Below, piece by piece: positions 41,799 to 56,100 of a stretch of 64,000 nt of DNA (position 1 is the first letter of the stretch; each line of letters opens with the position of its first letter). The translations under genes and the position numbers were made by a program. The notes beneath the pieces were generated by a model. The model worked only from the letters and a program-made list of their open reading frames with translations, searched no databases and was not told the origin of the DNA. This DNA is from Pavona decussata (taxonomy: Eukaryota), in assembly GCA_977016875.1 (NCBI GenBank), contig CDRNST010000175.1, forward strand, positions 868,001-932,000. The letters are read 5' to 3'.

Positions 41799-43160
41799 CT
41801 AGTTTCTGTTTGAAAGTTCTTGTTTATGTTTGTCAAGCCACTGATGAAATTCAACAATGTTTAAGTACCTGAGGGGGCATCTTTTGATGTCAGCAAAGCT
41901 GTTATTGCATCTTTCAGGCACTCTTTGGAAAGGATCCAATTGTACAAAATCTTCAACCATCTCCTTTTCATCTTTGAGAGAATCCCGAGTGGTATGTTGG
42001 ACAGAAGACTGGTGAACACTAACAGAGGTATCAAATTGTTCCGTAACCTCCTTGATGCCTTTTGTTGCCTTGCAGACCTTGCTTATTGACTGGAATGTTT
42101 TGTTGGGACCCATTCTCTGGACAGCAGACTTGCTTAGTCGATTAAAGATTTCCTGTGCCATGTCATCTTCCATGTTGTTTCCAGCACCACCCCTCCAGCT
42201 GACAGAGAAACCCCATTTAAATTCCTCTGACACGCGTGGGGTTAACATGCATTTTATTTGAGCAATGCGTATAAACATCTCAAGGGCATACTTGCTGTAA
42301 GCACCGATTGATTTAAAAACTGACAACAGCAGCTTCTGATTTATGAGGTTTCTTTCACCATCTGCCTCTGCTGCAGTGTCTTTAAGTTGCAAAATAAGGA
42401 TGGTGAGGAAGATGTAACACATGGCATAATTTGAGACATAATCCTCCTTTCCATTTGCAGTGACATTTCTTTGCAGAAGATACTCATCCATGAATTTTTC
42501 AAAAACACTGTCAAAATATCTTTTCTTGTCTTCGTCTGTTTGATGGGCAATGTTTGAAGGGAACTTGTAAAGGGAGGGAACATCCTCTGGACTTGCCATT
42601 CCAAAGAAAGTAAGAGCTGCAGTGACAATGTATGCTCGACCAACACTGAGAAATAGTTCCTTACTTCTTTCAAAGGAATCCAGTACTTTGGCTGGGGTGG
42701 CATTCCGGCGATTAAATTTTTCTCTAATTTTAGAGTTCCAATTTGGTTGACTGATTCTGCCTTGTACAGGAATGAATAAGAGTACTGCAGCAATGATGCT
42801 TTTGTGTGCCACATGACTGGTTTGAATGGGGAACAATGCTCAAAACGATCTGATGGAGTGTGGGAGCTTGAGAGGAAATCTTTCGCACCAGCAAATCTAA
42901 CTCTGGTCAACTGGTCATCAGCAAAAATTATCTTCATTTCCCTCATAGGATCAGCAGGGGTATCCTCCTTGTGAGCATTTTGTTTGGCCAGGTGCTGCTA
43001 ATCCCTCTGGTACTTCAGGGTTGTCAACATGTGGTACTTCATCTGCTTTGACCTAAATCTCTGAAATCCACTGCTCGTATGATCTCAAAATGCTGACACA
43101 ATCTTTATATTTAGCTTCATTGGCATTAAGAAGAGGTAAGCTCACAATTCTGCTGTTGCA
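41799..43160 (-). pseudogene. Academ transposase C-terminal half (DUF6589-like), frameshifted
   Basis: [19 protein letters not shown] (GDQLT motif), [39 protein letters not shown]. ORFs 42341-42946 and 41799-42836 join by a frameshift near 42730. Confidence 0.75.
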
Positions 43161-43442: not shown

Positions 43443-43656
43443 TTAACAGTATGCTAAATTTAGTATTATGTTAAATCGTATTTTATAGTTGGGGGGGGGG
43501 GGGGGGGCATTGAAATAATTCCCCAATAGAATAGGGGGTCCTAAATTTTTTTTGGCTTTATTGAGGGGGGTCTTGATAAAAAAAGGAGTTTTTTGGAATT
43601 TTTCACCCAGTCCCCACCCCCCCTCCGATAAATAATGAACAGTCCCTTATACCCCA

Positions 43657-43736
43657 GATCAGAGGTATGGATGTTATACCATTAACCTGAGGTATGGATG
43701 TTATACCACCGATCTGAAGTATGGATGTTATACCCG
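43657..43736. repeat. 27-bp minisatellite x 3
   Basis: ga(g/a)gtatggatgttatacc at 43662, 43689 and 43716. Confidence 0.9.
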
Positions 43737-44451
43737 CATATAGAAGGAGCTAATTTTCCTAACCAATAAAAAGCCATCTATATCCAAGTATTTTTTACTG
43801 AATTTAACGATACAAAAGTTAACAAAGTTCATTTATAATTTGTTACTAAAGTTTCTATGATAAATATCAATAGCATTTAATTTCCATAATTATACCCGCA
43901 ATAACTGCAGTTCTGGAATAAATTATTGCACTCGCTTATTTAATTTCTTGAGCAAATGTATTTCTAAAATAATGCACTTGTAATTTTTCATTTTTCGAAA
44001 CTTAGCTATACAAGAGATGACACAAAGAAATTACTTCAATCGATCATATATGGCTCGATTACTCAGACAAACTCAAACACCCTGTGTCAGTAGATGAAAC
44101 TATTCAGTAGAAAGTACTGGGAAAGCGATCTACATCCCATCGCTGTAACCGTGTAGTTGCCAGGTAAAAATGAAATAAGAAAAAGGCCAAATATGAAGTA
44201 GTTAGCTGACAATGATCATAACTTACAGTAATTTTTTCTTCCAAGGTCTAGATATAGTAGTCACACGCACTTACACTAGCAACCTAAACCAAGGTCAGGC
44301 TGGGTTGCCGCAATTGTCCCCTTAGCTAAATAATTTTTTTTTCTGCAATAAAAAGCTGATATAATGCCAGGCAAGTCTTACATTTAATTATTGAAAAGCA
44401 ATGTCAGCATGTTTTTCTTTAGAAAAGAAATCTATTTGTGTGCAAATTGAG

Positions 44452-46567
44452 TCATTCTTTAATTGTGCCACCCGTGCTTTCAGTGTCGACTTCATCTTTG
44501 TATGCTCGTATTTTCCGCAGAACCCTGTCTCTAAACAGAGTCTTTTCCTCTGTGTATATGCAATGCCTCCCCAGGCTAACTACAGCCTTTACTGCTGAGC
44601 CTATAGAAAAATATACAAAATTGGTTAAGTGAAATATATGATAAAAGGTCCTATAAATGGAATGTATGACAAAGGTGATTCACTTTGATTATAGTATATT
44701 TATTTTCAAAAGCAAAAAACGAGCTCATATTTGGCCTAAAGTGAAAGCTCAAGCTCTGAGCTCTCATTTCAGTTCACAACTTTCAAGAAAACACTTCAAA
44801 TGTAATTTAAAACGTATCCTTAATATACGGTTTATCATACTGTATCAACTGTATTCAGTTTTGTTTGTGTCAAATATTATGGCCGCAATTTATGTTGAAA
44901 CCACCCGACTTCCACGCACATTTTTTTCACGTTTGCACGATACTGTTTGCGAATGAATAGCTTGACAGAAACTTTACTCAATTTTACCACTGTCGCACAA
45001 TTTGAATATATAAGCGTAACATTTTAACTGGCTTTCCGTGCTTAAATTCAGTGATTGACAGGCGAAGTATGAATGGTTTAAGTAAACACCAAGTTTAACA
45101 TGCTCTACTTGCAAACTGTTCATACATCGCCTCTCATTTTATTTATGAAGATGAAACTGGACAATGTTTTGTACGTAACAATAGCACAACAATAGAAATA
45201 CGCTTGATTGTGAGTAATATTAATTTTAGGCAGATCAAAAACATCCTCAACAACGTGTAACAAATTAATTTTTCAGACCTCGTTAAAGCAGCGTCATTTA
45301 CAGTGACAAAACAAAAACTGATGAACGGGTTATCCCTGAAACTCTGTTTGTTTTTCCAGTCTTGAGCACTTAATTGAGTGCTATGCAGCAATTGGTATAT
45401 TCAATTAACCATTATCTTTAAGAGCGATTTCCAATTGTGTCGTATATCCAAAACTAAAGTAAATATTTTGGCCAATCACAGTAGACACTGGAAAGCAATC
45501 AACCGATCATAACTCAATGCAAATACATGTAACCCGTGCCAAGAGTGGAAAAACAAGAAAAGGTGTGCAATTGAGCCACGAATGGTGTTGGTTTTACCTA
45601 GTTCTAATGGGTTGATAAGTATCACTGAAGGAAGTAATGCAAATCTACAACTACTCTATTGACTATGCTATTGGTGAATTAAGGTATATCTCACCTGTTA
45701 AGCTCTGCAGGACAATAACATAATCTGATGGTTGACTGTAATGGCGCACAATGTGTTGGAAAAGCTGCAGTGATCTTCCTTCCGGAAAGGACCACAGGTT
45801 ATGTCGGCAGTCTTCTGGCTCCCAACAACCACAAGGTCCACTGGAGGGCTTTTCCCTAAGCCAGTGCCCAAGAACCACCGATGTCACAGTCTTTGTTAAC
45901 GCGTTTGGGTCTACAAAGGACAATAAATAAATATAAACCGTTTTATTATTTAACTGTTCGAAACTGTGCTGGGAAGAGTACAAATAACACCCAAAACGTG
46001 TACAAATCTCACGATATTTGTGCTCTGCAACACTGGTTTCTCATTTCTCTATATATTTTGTCATTTCGCTACACCCAGTCTAATAAATCTCTGCTAATGA
46101 GATGGTTTGCTCTATAGTATCTCGGGATATTTTTACTCGTCTCTTGTATTTTGACTCACCCTTCGAGAATGTCAGGCCTCAATGAAAGGAACAGTCTTGT
46201 ATGATATTCACGCACTTTTAAAAATGAGACCCCGTGTGAACAAAATGAGCAAAACCAGTGAACGCAATTTTGCCATCAAAGTGAGCTGTTTACTGGGATG
46301 CAGTAGCTTAAGGATTGTATGACATGTAAACATATATAAGCCAAAATCGACTGTTATGGGTACTAAGAGTTTACCTCTGTCCTTTTTGTCCTTCTTGTAG
46401 TAAAATGCATTCTCCAGGTCGGGGCAAATCATCCTTATGTAGTGTTGTACTCGTTTTTGCTGAGCGAAGGAGCACAAAACAACGACGCTGTAACCACACA
46501 GTTTGTTTCTACAGTTGGTGGTGTTCAGAAAGGCTCCGATGGGTGCAACTTGTTGTTCAAGCCTATC
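44452..46567 (-). CDS. 3' exons of a spliced gene resembling a beta-class N4C/N6A DNA methyltransferase (degenerate SAM motif); exons 46567-46375, 45910-45695, 44600-44452
   Basis: Three exons (193, 216, 149 nt) join in frame with GT-AG sites into 185 aa with no stop: ...YSVVVLCSFAQ...AFYYKK...RHNLW...LFQHIVRHYSQPSDYVIVLQSLTG/SAVKAVVSLGRHCIYTE. Confidence 0.55.
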
Positions 46568-48512
46568 CTTTACAGGAATGAAAAAAAAGTGTCGAGCAAG
46601 TAAATTATACACTGTGAGAAACTAATTACAGACAAAATAGCCAACTGACCGCTTAATAAAGGTCAACAAGCTCAAGTTTACGGTAAGTAAAGTTGACAAT
46701 ATCAGGGGAAGTAATTTATTTTCCGGTATTTGACAATTGACCTAAATAAAGGGCGACAGCTTAACAGAAGGCCGCTTAATATAGGTTTCTCGTAAGTCTC
46801 TTTTTCACCTTACCAATTGAAATCGTAAGTTCAATGATGAAAGAGTGAGGCCAGCATTTCCTCACACTTATACGTGTCATCTCAGCGAGGTCGATTGTGA
46901 GCAACACTCTGATTGACATACTCAACGAAAATTTAATGAACCAGTAAATATTTTTACCACCGAGCCACTCTTACCTCCTGAAAAAAAGGAACTAAACTAA
47001 TATATGTCCTGGATAATCTATCCTAAATGCAACAGAGAAATGGGTTGTTATTCATTGCGGTAACCATCAGACATGTTAGAAAATCTCAGGCACTTGGTCT
47101 GGTATAGCAAGATTGACGCAGTGCCATCTTCCCCCGTCCCCTTCCCTCACAAAGACCAACAGCAGTAAGGAGAACGTTAAACATTAAAAATTAGTTGGCA
47201 ATATTTGAACTTTGTAGTTGCCAATAATTGCAGAAATAAAGTATTAATGGAAAATGGTCTGGAACTGCTCCATGTTGTGCCTTCACCCTCCTTATCCAAC
47301 AGTAAAGGTGAGCCTATGCTGAGTTTGAATTGTGGGATCGTCACTGAAAATTTTGCAGACTTTTTCATTTCTTACACATTTGTACATTGCTGTTCTTACA
47401 TGCCATCAAGAGAGTAAAACATGATATCAAAATACACAGCTCTCAGTACTTGCCTACCGTTGTTACATAGTTGACAACATGTCATACTACCATGTTTAGC
47501 ATGAAGTTGAACTTCTTAAGAGCTCGCTTCCATAGTTAAAGTCTTTGTGAAAGGCAGAGATGTTTCTTAAATTTTACATTCAGAGATAGAACTGTTAGTT
47601 AATAGATACTTTCTTTAGATTGCAAATGTAATCAATATGTGAACTTAGGAGTATGCTAAGGAAAGCATAGGTACAAAAACAAGTAATACACAACGATGCA
47701 ATAGGAAATGAAATAACCTTCATTTTAGGGGAAAGCTACTTGCAAACACAGAGATAAGAAATGCACTGGTCACAAAAAATTGCTGTGCCTCTGGCTCTTT
47801 CTCAAACTTGAATGATATTCCCCTTAGGTAAAAGGTCAAAACAACTGCCTCAAGTCATGACCCAGCTTTTTTTCAATGATAAAGTTGGTACTGCTGTTTA
47901 CCTCCTCCTAAACAATGGTATACGCCACCTTGTGATGCCCTGCCTTATTTTATGAGGACCCAGTTTTGGGGCATAATTTCGATACCCTCTCACCCCTTTC
48001 TCACCGATTCCAGAAGCCCGTCTCCTCTTACTAAGGGATGACAACTTCACTCAAGCAACCCTTACTATAAATGGATGACAGCTACAGTAATTACGCTCCC
48101 CCACCCTCTGTAATAAATGTGCGTCTATAGAAACTCAACAATTTATGGACATCAACACACATGAATGAGATTAATATTATGGAGAGCTCACATTGTCTCT
48201 CCATCTTATATCAGACCAGCAGGATGCAAATTTATGATTTAAAGTAGTCATTAAGAATTTCCAAGATACTTCTCTCTATGAATGCTAAAGTCTTAATATT
48301 TTTACTCATTTGACCCAGGGTCACGTGAACAGACGCGAAGAAACTTAATCTGTTTATGTGTCAATTTTTATTGTTTCTTGTGCATGGCAAATGTCGTTTT
48401 TCCCTGTATTTCATTCTGACTACAAAAAATTCAATTCTATCTGGTGGCTACTTATTGCGTCACTATATCTCTGTATCTATCGATTTTGGGGAAGTAACGA
48501 TGCTGGAGGTTA

Positions 48513-49420
48513 TCACTGCCAAAAGGTTGTAAGCTTACGTACCACGCAGTCAAATATGGCGCGAGTATAAGCTGAAAACAGCTTCTTGTTATCTATCAGA
48601 TCTTTTGTTAGGGCAAGGAGATCACGCGCCTGTTCCTCCATGAACTTTCTCCATAACCTTGATGAATCAGCAGATACAGATCCCGAAGTATGAGCTATGG
48701 ATGGGTCAGTTGTTGGTGCTGATGCAAATGTCTCTTCTTGAGGTGGAGAATCATTATCTTCCACGTGTTGGTCTCCTATCCTCCGGAGCTTTAAGGCCAT
48801 TGCCTTCACGGAACGATCTTGTGGAAAGTTTGTTGTTGACAACTTTTCCTTTACTTTATACCCCTCAATAGCTCCTGTCTCGAGGTCTTCTTTGCAGAGT
48901 TGTTTCAGCTTTTCCGTTTCCCTTGCTGTCTAAGGTTTAGGTGTTGTTTTGTCTCCCTTTGCCGCTTGACCCTCTTGAATGCTGGCAGTTTTCAGGGAAA
49001 CAAGTTTGCTGACTGCTCTACGACCTAGATCATCCTCTCTAACCTTATCATGAACACAGTAATACTTGGCTTGTGGTTGGGTTTTGTGCTGTGCTAGGGC
49101 AGCAAGATGATCTTTTTCATCCGGAGGGCCATGGGGAAGTGCATTCCTGTTGCAAGAGACTTCCTTATTGTAGTTGCGCATATTCTTCCTCCTGTCTCAA
49201 TGCCTTCTCTCTGGAATGTTCTCCACAGAGATGTTGATACCTGCAAAGGCGTCAGTGACACTCCATTACTTGAAACAAATAGTTGCTCAACCTGTGGGGC
49301 AATTGCAGTGAACTGGCTTCGTACAGTTCTTAGGTATATGTCTATCAATTTGTATAAATCAACGTACACCCAGACAACTGCAGTGCCATATTTGTCGGCT
49401 GTTTTGTGTTTACCCTTTTA
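48513..49420 (-). pseudogene. Tyrosine recombinase C-terminal half plus helical tail, inactive
   Basis: HKTADKYG, LFVSSNG, ICATTIRKS, LAALAQHK..QAKYY (catalytic K, R, H, Y pattern). Frameshift near 49135; TAG at 48930 is in frame with ORF 48513-48842. Confidence 0.75.
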
Positions 49421-50169: not shown

Positions 50170-53100
50170 TGGTAAGTAAAGGACTATCAGGAACGTTCAA
50201 GTAGGGAGATGACAACAGAGTCAGCAGTGGAGTGTCTTCCAGGTCTTGATTCTATGGCCACTTGTCCTACTATCCGATTAACCTCAGGATATGCATACAT
50301 TTTGGGAATGTCTTGTTCAAGAAATCTAAAAGAAAGAAAGACAGTTTTTAGCTCCAAATATAAGCCTGTCTGAATTTTGAAGTGCCTCTTAGGAAGACCT
50401 CACTCAACAGACATGGAATCTTGTGTTTTTATGATGGAAATTATTGAAATTTTATGCAGTGTTAACCCTGAGGGAATGAGCTGACTTTCCACAAATAATC
50501 AGAAAATTTAAAAGCTTACGCGAGTGTATTGTTGAGTAAGACTCTGTACCATGCTTATAATTTTCGTCCTGTTCCATCAGAGGGCATGCTCAGTAATGAG
50601 CTCTTTTCCGTCTGGAAATTTTTGAAAAACAGTTTGCATAAACATTCAACATATTCCAAGTAAGTACATTAAATTATAACAAGGTTATACATGAATTGTC
50701 AATAATAATATTGTTACAACAAATTATTCCAACGAAAATGGCCATCATAATTACAAACAAAAAAGGATGGGTCTTCATGAGTGCATTATCATTTAAGATT
50801 ACCACTTACTCTCAGGAAGCATTTACTTTGTTGTGTTTGCCGCACCGTGACATGTGAGAGTTGATTTGCTCCACTTCCTCACCTGCGGAACAGGCACTTC
50901 CCTCCTGCCAACGGCCTCCCCATATGACCTGTATATTAGGAGCTTCATTGCAATTCATAGCAATTTCTCCAGGTAAAAGCTGCCAAGAATGTACATGTAA
51001 CTTGTAGTTCATTTTCAAGTACTGTTGAAGACTTTGTGAGATTACAAGTATTGATTATTACCTGACAAGTCCAGTTGTGTGCCTTAGCATGCATTACTGA
51101 CAAGGCAGGTTTCATGTCACTTCTATCTAGACCACCAGTCTTTCTTGCCCATTTCCAATATTTACAAACTGTATCCTCCCAAAAAAATTGACACCAGCAG
51201 GTATCATTTTTTTTAGATGTATATAGTTTGCATAACCAAACAATTCCCCCTGGAACATATTCACAGCCCACTGAGCCAGACCATGCCTGCAACCTATAAC
51301 AAGAGTTTTCACTCAGAGGAAGTCTATCTACTAAAAACAGCTACAGTATGTGATAAACTTTAAAGCATGGGTGTAATATTTTGTTTAAAGTATATTTTGA
51401 CCTGCTATTTCAAGTCCAGTCTCATCAAGTTTGGCTGACTTTCCTACTTTAGTGTTTGCAGCCCTCCAGTGTGAATTGCCACATCTATTATCACCATCCT
51501 ACAAAAACAAAAGAAACCTTGTTGAAGGCAACATGCAATTTGAGTAAGCTTCAGAAGACATTCTCAGAACACAGGTATCAGTTGTCACATTGCCTGAGGT
51601 CATTTATTTGTTGCTGAAACTTAAATTCGTTTTAAAAAGAAACTTCATAGCAAAATATGAGTTATTATTAAAGTGTCTGAGTTTGTGAATATGGACATCC
51701 TCTCAATTAAACATACAAGCAAGTGATTTCAAAGCAAAAAAGGGGATATATTCTTCAAAAATACCCAAAACTTCAATATATACATGTATGATAAGTAAAA
51801 CCTGAAGAAAATAAGCTACCCCAACGTTGTACTGTACAAGAGAAACATTTCCTGGGTAAACAACTAGGAATATGTAATAATGGGATACACAAAGTGTTCC
51901 CAATAAACCTTAGATTTGGACTGTTTTGCATAGACCGTCTTCAAGTGACTTTCAACATTGTCCTTATTGGCAATGAAGAGATCTCCGTAGTAGGATGGCC
52001 TTTGCTGACTGTGAACGGAAAAGTATTGAAAATCAAAGGCTCCTAAGAGCTAACTCATTCATCCATATAACCAAAATTGTGGTGAAAATGTGATCAGTTG
52101 TTGGAGATGTTGAAGCTACACTCCTTATCCCATGCAACCAAAATCGAGATTAACATTAAGGTCTCTAGCTGTAATTACAAAAAAGTTTGTTGTTGGGTTG
52201 ATTAATTGATATTGGGGTTTTACGAGATAGAAAATGTTTTGCTATTTTTGTCCCATGAATGGGAGTTTGAGGAAGGAGACACAAAACAGAGTATTCACTG
52301 CAAAACCTGTTCAAGCAAGTAGAATGCTACATCCTAACACAACATCTAACTTTATTTTCCTCAAATTGAACAATACTTAATGTTAACAAGCTTAATCTAT
52401 AAAATGTTTGAAAGTTGCTCTTTAACTTTATTTATTAACATAGTTAACACTCAGATGCAGTGATTAAATAGGAAAATATGCAATTATACATACTTTCAGA
52501 TATACCTGATCAAATCTTACATAGAACTGAAACTAAATGCTAGCAGTAATCTGCAACAGATAGTGGAAATCGACAAAAGGAAATGCAACCTCTATACAGT
52601 TCCTACAACTACAAGATTGAGGTTGTTATTTAATTGTAAGTAACAAGAACACAGCATTTCTTAACAACAATCAAGGAAGTGTTAATTTTTCTGTGGCAAA
52701 TTTTATCTTCTTTATGGGTAGAAGTGTTGCACATATCTTGCTTGTATTTAGTTTTGTGACATGTGCTTTGATAGGGAAACTTTGCAAGTATAGTAACATT
52801 CTAAGGGCCTCTTGACATTAGCTCGGTAACCAGGACGAATTCTGGGGTGTGTTCATATGGGAATTTTAAGCCCGGTTTACCGGGATGAATTCAAGAAAGA
52901 CAATCAAAATTGTGGAACATAAATTTGTATTGTTTGCAACTTTCAAAGCTTTCTCTACCCTTGGAACTTTACTAATAAAGCTAATTCACATACTTGTAAA
53001 GTGGAAATACTTCCAAGATCAAAACTATGCCACTTCGTTGGCCGCTATGTTTTGAGAGCGAAGCTATTTTGTTTAAAAACTTTCATCATTGTCACTGGGC

Positions 53101-56100
53101 TGGAGTGTTCATATGGGAAAATTTTCATCCTGGTTACCGTGATGTGGGCTGCAAAAACTGAGATCTCGGTTACTGGGCCAGCTCAGCCTCTGTACGGCAA
53201 TTGTATCGCAGGGCCTTGTACGGCAATCTGTATAACACATGTACGCGCGACCGTGGAACCTGATCGAAATTTGCGCTGTAAAAACAGATTTAGCCAGATT
53301 GTAGGTCGCTTCACTTTTTATGTATGTGTTGTAAGTTTTAAAGCAAATGAAATAATCGTCAACAGAGAGAATTTACTTACCGAAATGACGTGTGAAAGAG
53401 AGTCAAATATTCCTACCAAAAATGGCTTCCTTCTCTGACACGGAACACGAGGCGATGAGACCCAATGGACAAAAACAGCCCCTGGAGGGGACGGTACGTA
53501 CGCGGGCTCATTTTCAGAGTAAAAAGAATGTCTTGGACTAATTTTATTTACTGAATACCCACCTTAAAAATATAAATTCCCTCACGGTGTTTTGCAATCT
53601 TTAATTAGGCTTGTTTTGTTTGCTATTCGTGGCAAGTTGACTTATTGGTCAGCGGTTGCTCAAATCAAAGTTTTACGTCACTTCCGCTATTTTCGCTAAC
53701 GACGTCACATCCGTCTACGCAGATTTTGCTAACGCCGTTTTGCCCATCTCTGCAAAAACTCATCCATTGCTTCGCAAGCTCCGCAATGAATGAGTTAAAA
53801 AGAACGTATCAAATCCTTGCTACAATGTAAGACAAAATTACAATATGCTCAGCCAACAACTATTATAGTTGAAAGTGTATTCACATTAAATTAATGCTAC
53901 AACATAAAAAGCACCTCAAGAAATTTAAGGCAAAATGTGATGTTTAGAAGAAACCATAGACTCAGAGTAAAAGTAAACATTTCTATGCATGCAGGTGTCC
54001 ACTTCCACTACTTCCTGTTCAATAAATCTTTATACTGACCTTCCTGATGACTTAAAACGAGTAAGTTTCATATTGCCATCCACTTGACAAGAATGCTGAG
54101 AAATGGAGCAAGAAGGACAATGCATCCAGTTCAGTCCTTGAAGACAGTCTAACTCATGCTGGCAGAACTTCCACTCTTTAAAGGCACGACTAAAAGTCGA
54201 ATAGTTAATAGTTGGTGCCTGTGAACACAATGGGACATTGTTTTATCAACATGGTGCAGTACAACAAACAAAAGAAACAACAAACATTAATTTTGTACTC
54301 ACTGCAACTGAATACTATGCAAATTTAAATCAGAATAAGAACAATACAATTGAACATAAAAACAGAGTTTTGGTACAATTTAAGGATACTTCCTGGGTTC
54401 GCTGGTGTCCTTTGGAAAAAAATTCGTACGCGCGCAAGTTTTAATAAACCTCTAACAAACTATATATGATTATAAAGCTTAATAAATGTAGTTTCCTATA
54501 AAAAATATAATTTAGCGATCTTTTCCTTTTTTAAGTGCCAGGAGCCAGTAGAACCTCGAATTGACCGATGGTCGTTCCATTGAATTAATCGGTTATCGAA
54601 CGCTGTGCGAAAAAGGAAATCACTGCACAGTGTTATTCACAAGGCATCAATCAACAAAAAGGTGTCAGGCTTTTTCAAAATTCTGATTGGTTATTTAGAT
54701 ATCCACGTTTAAAGTTTGAGTAGCAAAAAATATTTGAGGCGTGTTGCGTAAACAGTCACCACGGAAAAAATATTTTGAAAATCAAAATTCCCTGACACCT
54801 CTTTGTTTGTCAGTATTCCTCGAATCTTCTGGCCAAATTTCACGACAATCCGTCAAAACTACATACCCTGTTAATTCGTTCAAAGTCGACATACTCTGCC
54901 AAAATTCAAGTGCGCGTTTTCGCTCGATAAAGGTTTGCAAGAAAAACAAGCCTCCACAGGAGATTATGACACCTCATTACATGGCGAGCCAATCGAGCAA
55001 CAGGACCCCATGGCGTCAACAACAATAGCACAGAATTTTGCGGAAAAAGTATCGCGTTGCAGACACGTTTTAGACTCCGCTGATGTGATCGAGCGAGATG
55101 GGGAAAGTGGCGAAAGGCAAACGTAAAAATCAACCAGGAAAACTTGGAAAAACCAAGGCAAACGAAACCGAAAGCGCGTCAGCGGAGAGTTTGAGGAGTG
55201 CACTGATATCAGAGATGAAATCTATTGGGTGGGTTGTGCGTTTTGATTGCGTGTTATGTAATTTACGCTTCAAGCTAAGGCGATTATTCATTTCGTATCA
55301 AAGGAAATGTATAATGAAAGAAAATCGCATTTTTACTGTTATTTAGGTACGATAGTGATTTCTTCGTAAGAAATCTTTAACATAGCGTGGAGCGGAGCAA
55401 AAAGCGAGAGAAAGGGCCACGCAGAACGCGCCATCTCCATTATTACACATGGGCTCATGCGCTTCTGGTGAGTTCAATTTCATCGGTCTAATTCTTGCTG
55501 ATTTATGTTTCATTACAAACGCGCAGTAAAACGTTATTTGGTTTTATTTCGCTGCAGAAGAAAGAAATCGGCCCAGAGGATGCAGAATATGATATTTGAT
55601 ATTTTCACAGGACGCTTGCAAAGTTACCCTGCAGGACTTTTGCACGGCAATCGACCTCTGTGTACTTGATCCAATAACAGAGGATAAATTTGAAGGCCGC
55701 TGCTCCAGTTCTTCCTGATCACCTTCGACAGAACCCTTAACGTTGATTAGAGTTTCTTGGTCGAACCAAGAGCCTTTGTTGCTCTCTGCAAGATCACGTT
55801 TTCGATCTTCGCAGAAACCTATCTTTCCCTTTTTCTTAGGCCCCACCTTCTTCCGGGATTATATCCACAGGCTCTTTTCGTTTTGTTATGACTTTTCCAT
55901 GTGGGAAGCACGAAGAATATAAAATTCGAAGTGAGAAATTTTGTGCAGGCGAGATGTAAACAAAATATGCTTATTTCTGAAATAAGAGCTCCCGGATGAA
56001 GCGTTTTGCCGCGAAAATTCATCTGGGGCGTCTCGCACTAAGAAGATTATGACACCTGTTCTATTTGTTTACTTTTATATGGAAATACGTTTTCCTAAAT

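Follow-up and report, generated by a model that had tools for sequence, protein, structure and literature searches.

The DNA analysed here (hereafter the window) is a stretch of 64,000 nucleotides from the stony coral Pavona decussata (assembly GCA_977016875.1, contig CDRNST010000175.1, positions 868,001 to 932,000). Its minus strand carries, at 44452-46567, three exons (A, B, and C), as a first-pass annotation of the letters had read them (Table 1). Spliced together they keep the frame and comprise 185 codons and a stop codon; their borders are GT/AG, and the phases agree (0 where exon A begins, 1 at both internal junctions). The same annotation took the gene for an animal relative of bacterial beta-class amino-DNA-methyltransferases with altered motifs, possibly catalytically dead and borne by a mobile element, and described its neighbours as broken. 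The latter holds true, i.e. a frameshifted DUF6589 relic lies downstream of the gene and a relic of a Kyakuja-Dileera-Zisupton (KDZ) transposase lies upstream. The stop codon of the 185-codon product follows about 30 residues after the strand beta2 motif.

Table 1. Features of the gene and its surroundings, in positions of the window; the polyadenylation signal and the start exon are sequence readings only.
Feature	Position	Strand	Description
Exon A	46375-46567	-	193 nt (64 codons + 1 nt); 5' end is a phase-0 AG acceptor
Intron 1	45911-46374	-	GTAAAC...TTGTAG; 464 nt; phase 1
Exon B	45695-45910	-	216 nt; family-specific VxGHW strand, motif X-like helix, strand beta1
Motif X-to-motif I segment	45695-45803	-	HNLWSFPEGRSLQLFQHIVRHYSQPSDYVIVLQSLT; within exon B; register from hhalign, MAFFT, and PDB profile alignment
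Intron 2	44601-45694	-	GTGAGA...CTATAG; phase 1, splits the last Gly codon of motif I
Exon C	44452-44600	-	149 nt including TGA at 44452-44454; equivalents of alphaA, strand beta2 (GRHCIYTE), alphaB
Possible polyadenylation signal	44383-44392	-	AATAAT/ATTAAA; 60-70 nt past the stop
Speculative start exon	47345-47368	-	8 codons; ATG at 47368; donor TCA/GTGACG in phase 0; would join exon A in frame
KDZ-type transposase relic	50815-54242	-	frameshifted; CPSC...DGNxKLxRF, H..H...C, and GEEVEQ-type pieces; PF18758 E = 0.0027 on 50948-51340
DUF6589 relic	41799-42946	-	two overlapping open frames across a frameshift; PF20231 E = 5e-16 and 4e-5
High-copy repeat	48100-48700		depth up to ~13,000 versus ~30 in the flanks (DNA run)
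27-bp minisatellite	43647-43746	-	~0.7 kb 3' of the stop

A search of the 602-Mb assembly revealed only one close paralogue, which is located on contig C11 and likewise consists of three exons with GT/AG borders. The exons of the two copies are 79-80% identical on the DNA level and 77-78% on the protein level (78% for exon A), and the introns cannot be aligned (intron 1 measures 464 nt versus 370 nt). The paralogue check proposed for the junctions was borne out, as intron positions and phases are identical in both copies. The ratio of nonsynonymous to synonymous substitutions (dN/dS), another check that had been called for, was determined exon by exon between the two copies from Nei-Gojobori counts. 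It amounts to 0.10 for exon A and 0.14 for exon B, at a dS of about 1; in exon C the synonymous sites are saturated, and the ratio of the uncorrected proportions (pN/pS) is 0.33. Since the intron positions and phases match, the introns are unalignable, and dN/dS is as low as about 0.1-0.14, the reading frame has been under purifying selection. Both copies keep 185 stop-free codons and every splice site.

The selective constraint extends to the very beginning of the known coding region. For the first 45 codons of exon A alone pN/pS is 0.18, which indicates that translation runs across the phase-0 acceptor of this exon. The acceptor is kept in four loci and, together with the selection on these 45 codons, implies that the gene has, or once had, coding sequence in an exon further upstream. 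Further support for the exon borders comes from more distant relatives. The position and phase of intron 2 are common to the window gene, its paralogue, the distant homologues L011 and L012, and the L108/L008 subfamily. L010, a related copy on a JGI contig, precisely lacks intron 1 at the predicted site, and because it has lost exactly this intron, the A/B junction is indirectly supported as well.

According to the first-pass annotation, the tail of the protein follows the consensus of beta-class methyltransferases. This proved correct, and the resemblance can be assigned to a defined part of these enzymes. In scans of 24,736 Pfam families, PF01555 was the only, or the only recurrent, match of the family members; four of 12 members matched it (best expectation value, E, 0.0097), and the matches always lie at profile positions 154-210 of 221. 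The E-values were 0.014 for exon B of L014, 0.13 for exon B of L012, and 0.08 for the contiguous B+C frame of L091. In addition, a profile (A3) was built from family sequences only (contiguous L091-type frames plus exon B and exon C fragments), with no methyltransferase included. When it was compared with all PDB sequences, the first four places were taken by M.RsrI (wild type and mutant, E = 0.0027-0.0028), TTHA0409 (0.015), and M.MboIIA (0.33). All four are beta-class enzymes, and they align at the motif X, I, II region. Exon B alone or the A+B frame of L010 retrieved nothing from the PDB sequences, and a feature search in a protein atlas gave unrelated leads only (scores < 0.9).

The register of the two exons could be fixed by hhalign with 38 aligned PF01555 enzymes (sequences of viral contigs and E. 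coli YhdJ) as template. Exon B aligned with template columns 215-255 (P = 7e-5, z = 9.2) and exon C with columns 261-298 (P = 0.0045, z = 5.5); in neither case did any of 100 column shuffles score as high, and reversed profiles gave background scores. The five template columns in between are exactly the FxGSG loop; the final four residues of exon B, together with the split Gly, occupy them. A MAFFT alignment from which all methyltransferases were left out gave the same arrangement, in that the exon B and exon C fragments fall on the contiguous L091 frame one column apart. An AlphaFold model of the B+C region of L091, a distant paralogue, shows a helix-strand-helix-strand-helix arrangement at low confidence (predicted local distance difference test, pLDDT, 52.5). 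In a Foldseek comparison of this model with the PDB, the top 15 hits are all beta-class DNA methyltransferases (E = 0.03-0.2), including M.RsrI, M.PvuII, TTHA0409, M1.HpyAVI, M.MboIIA, and M.BceJIV, and the rotifer enzyme N4CMT (8s9o) takes rank 35. It is important to note that these tests rest on the same few family sequences, so that they are not fully independent. On the profile level, remote homology of exons B and C with the cofactor-binding, C-terminal part (motifs X, I, and II) of beta-class N6A/N4C DNA methyltransferases is established. The methyltransferase relationship that the first-pass annotation had proposed is supported for exons B and C; the similarity of exon A is not significant.

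The loop for S-adenosylmethionine binding is not kept. The first-pass annotation had noted that the FxGxG motif is changed, and the profile register confirms this: the window gene reads Q-S-L-T-G, and the codon of the last Gly, the only one remaining in the window gene and its paralogue, is split by the phase-1 intron. At the place of D-P-F-x-G-S-G of the enzymes, we found V-L-Q-S-L-T-G in the window gene, V-A-R-N-W-T-G in the paralogue, V-K-N-L-T-G in L014, H-L-F-P-S-N-G in L011, D-L-F-S-H-N-A in L091, and D-I-G-S-E-T-G in L108. Within exon B, the two paralogues diverge most strongly in this loop, with pN/pS of 0.58 (based on six codons only) versus 0.19 for the remainder. Moreover, only about 25 residues lie between the conserved VxGHW strand and the motif X helix, where the enzymes have their target-recognition insert. 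Two single loci have a glycine-rich motif I loop, namely L009 (G000:C56:834652-834780) with LCSGAGT and L008 (G000:C195:2843335-2843427) with IRSGNG followed by a GT donor; both are candidate cofactor-binding relatives.

In beta-class enzymes the catalytic motif IV, (D/S/N)PP(Y/F/W), is N-terminal to motif I. The first-pass annotation expected a DPPY motif in a possible upstream exon at 47345-47285, and neither could be substantiated. No [DNS]PP[YFWH] occurs in any frame upstream of exon A over 17.4 kb in the window, 13.6 kb at the paralogous locus, and 6 kb in L014. The proposed exon is conserved neither in the paralogue nor in a related contig and has no match to a methyltransferase profile; its best donor (AGG/GTGAAG, ~47288) is in phase 1 versus the phase-0 acceptor of exon A, and the join would create a stop. 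Likewise, the speculative start exon in Table 1 is supported neither by conservation nor by RNA. When 6,837 open frames were scanned with methyltransferase profiles, the B exons of L014 and of the paralogue ranked first, and the only N-terminal candidate (52800-52633, E = 0.7) was non-significant and not conserved. Comparisons by tblastx of the window with the paralogous locus, and of both with L014, revealed no conserved upstream exon; the best upstream pieces turned out to be the KDZ transposase relic and a retroelement tail and were rejected as exons. In a second subfamily, compared between this genome and another species, conservation begins at the equivalent of exon A, with nothing upstream.

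From these data it is rather likely that the window harbours a low-copy coral gene for a non-catalytic derivative of a beta-class DNA amino-methyltransferase, selected for a binding or scaffolding role. The three exons would represent the C-terminal coding exons of this gene, and its product would end in the strongly diverged S-adenosylmethionine-binding half of a permuted PF01555-type enzyme, comprising the motif X helix, beta1, alphaA, beta2, and alphaB. Purifying selection would have kept this scaffold, with the glycine loop for the cofactor replaced and varying between paralogues. We infer a pseudo-methyltransferase that may act through binding, because the loop is replaced, a target-recognition insert would have almost no space, and the upstream sequence yielded no catalytic motif. 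Motif I is degenerate, and the earlier suspicion of a catalytically dead derivative is also the most economical reading. The protein might bind a partner protein or nucleic acid; since beta-class enzymes act as dimers, partner binding is conceivable. The gene is part of a larger unannotated family found in corals and in other assemblies. In this genome some branches of the family are multi-copy, which suggests that its ancestry probably traces to a mobile element or virus, from which the branch of the window gene would have been retained as a host gene.

Several results weigh against this reading. The single exons of the window gene gave no Pfam match at E <= 10, and no family member reaches the PF01555 gathering score of 26.7 bits (the best, L014, attains 15.8 bits, E = 0.014). 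A six-frame scan of the whole genome for PF01555 yielded nothing above the cut-off and only two sub-threshold loci, neither of which is the window gene; the corresponding scan for ParB_N (PF02195) had no match at all. The comparison of exon A with methyltransferases gave z = 1.3, and with more members added nine of 60 shuffles were as good. For the natural A+B frame of L010, the predicted structure (pLDDT 55.9) comprises helix-strand-helix with another strand further on, an order compatible with alphaD-beta5-alphaE...beta7; it has no meaningful match in the PDB, and the same frame has no match in Pfam. Confidence is low for either structure model (pLDDT 52-56), and the informative one is that of a distant paralogue rather than of the window gene. 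Three read runs that were guessed to be RNA cover the introns as well as the exons, contain no joints, and behave like low-coverage DNA, so that they give no RNA evidence. Neither an annotated protein nor a bacterial enzyme was found among 1.84 billion representatives, and word searches agree. Related copies from other assemblies are disrupted, L010 by a frameshift and a stop, L013 by a stop, and L014, on a contig of 1.2x coverage, by a frameshift. Finally, the 5' end of the gene would lie beyond exon A, which leaves room for a catalytic exon farther away.

Some of these points would also fit a decaying relic, i.e. the 3' part of a transposon- or virus-borne gene whose low dN/dS dates from the time of active element lineages, both copies now being unexpressed. 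Relics of transposable elements lie on both sides of the gene, related copies elsewhere are disrupted, and an upstream coding exon, a transcript, and an annotated protein were not found. Moreover, distant relatives are multi-copy. According to profile searches the genome contains at least ~20 related loci. Whereas the window type comprises only two copies, the L091 type accounts for at least 12 loci, several of which are 92-96% identical over the last 77 residues, and the L108 type for three apparently identical loci. Nevertheless, we consider a relic unlikely, as both copies have maintained their stop-free codons, splice sites, and phases despite unalignable introns and a dS of about 1. Furthermore, there are only two close copies, without terminal inverted repeats and with flanks that are unrelated save for a rare minisatellite. 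Mobile carriage, as the first-pass annotation had proposed, is therefore not sustained for the window copy: numerous copies of near identity, repeats at the termini, and a linked transposase found with each copy are all missing, the two copies are ancient, and no relevant inverted repeats flank the gene.

That the gene encodes an active amino-methyltransferase for DNA or RNA, with unusual motifs and with catalytic N-terminal exons that lie beyond the examined stretch or are too diverged to be recognised, appears quite improbable. The conserved phase-0 acceptor requires upstream coding sequence, strand beta2 still ends in an acidic residue (IYTE, IFLE), and the glycine-rich loops of L009 and L008 would suit such an enzyme. 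However, of the loop residues of the enzymes, the conserved Asp, the Phe, and all but one of the three Gly are gone from the window gene, and the loop differs between the paralogues; the upstream regions scanned contain neither a DPPY-like motif nor a conserved exon, and the short distance from the GHW strand to motif X speaks against activity, too. A chance or convergent resemblance in a short helix-strand-helix segment of an unrelated fold, which would explain why every individual score stays under curated thresholds, why Foldseek gave E >= 0.03 on a low-confidence model, and why a protein-language-model search led to unrelated families, is very improbable, because Pfam scans, the PDB profile search, hhalign with its shuffles, and Foldseek agree on family and region, albeit on shared sequences, and two separately tested exons adjoin in exact register.

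The pseudo-methyltransferase favoured here has relatives whose organization varies. In the L091 type there is no intron between the equivalents of exons B and C; multi-copy loci of this type include G000:C214:1191652-1192056 (L091/L107), G000:C104:3325240 and 3335964, and about 10 more. Most of these copies have only the last 77 residues in common, as if they had been truncated or captured by a repeat. In the L108 type, the last Gly codon of motif I is still interrupted by the phase-1 intron. Exon C was not found in the distant homologues L011 and L012, which stem from another assembly. In L012 (2809-5385), a gene with an RVT_1 reverse transcriptase sits inside the apparent intron between the exon A-like and B-like pieces. 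All relatives in public data are unnamed open-frame fragments (ENA, JGI, and Logan assemblies); a HMMER search of the 1.84 billion representatives with an exon B profile likewise retrieved only short genomic open frames of relatives and WD40 false positives. We found no paper on a coral family of such genes in the literature. A broader proposal, possible but rather doubtful at present, is that these loci form an unannotated, intron-bearing coral, perhaps wider cnidarian, family derived from bacterial or viral beta-class enzymes. It would constitute a second independent metazoan case after N4CMT, with the window branch as a retained pseudo-methyltransferase and other branches, among them some whose loop is glycine-rich, on mobile elements.

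To our knowledge, amino-methyltransferases of the PF01555 type are regarded as essentially prokaryotic and viral. With the beta-class enzymes of this family (M.RsrI, M.PvuII, M.MboIIA, TTHA0409, and CcrM) the coral gene shares the C-terminal elements in the same order and spacing near the C-terminus: a P..L...I helix, a GD-V strand, the loop, alphaA, a GR..I..E strand, and alphaB. It differs from them by the replaced FxGxG, the failure to find a (D/S/N)PP(Y/F/W) motif in the upstream regions scanned, the near absence of a target-recognition insert, its spliceosomal introns, and scores under the gathering threshold. The closest parallel is N4CMT of bdelloid rotifers, also an intron-containing animal gene derived from a bacterial-type PF01555 methyltransferase. 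In N4CMT, however, the motifs are intact, the PF01555 profile recognises the protein, a chromodomain is fused to it, and activity was demonstrated, whereas the coral family has diverged much further and is probably inactive. N4CMT has been described as a PF01555 enzyme without other eukaryotic homologues (PMC8885841). A survey of eukaryotic adenine methyltransferases distinguishes three permuted clades, and searching its text for the term revealed no mention of Cnidaria (PMC4738411). Parallels for a methyltransferase fold retained with disrupted cofactor or catalytic motifs are METTL14 (with METTL3) and the inactive domain of the DIRS1 retrotransposon, the latter linked to a mobile element (PMC4738411). 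Unlike the coral gene, these two are assigned there to the MT-A70 and PCIF1-like group 2 clades; any partner or binding activity of the coral product is putative. If such a diverged family with ancient, conserved introns does exist in corals, they would be the second animal lineage to have acquired the PF01555 fold, and the window gene would exemplify an enzyme scaffold that was retained although its cofactor loop was apparently lost. Such genes slip past the thresholds of Pfam as well as the present catalogues of proteins. Until the expression and the 5' region of the gene have been established, the practical weight of the finding is modest.

The surroundings of the two paralogues differ: neither the KDZ relic nor the DUF6589 relic nor the high-copy repeat is common to the paralogous locus. 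DUF6589 is a family seen in repeated elements. The only flank feature that the copies have in common is the minisatellite, which occurs at only three loci in the genome, the window, G000:C11:1243257-1243726, and G000:C148:2021006-2021662. Two of them sit 0.6-0.7 kb 3' of the two paralogues; at the third (C148), the 10 kb examined contain no copy of the gene. Upstream of the gene, an open frame at 49097-49417 (minus strand) without a Pfam match contains an IRKSLATGMH piece that recalls C-terminal motifs of tyrosine recombinases (Crypton/DIRS-type). Another one, at 48516-48929 on the same strand, overlaps the high-copy repeat and has a BH3-like LRRIGD string, which is probably incidental.

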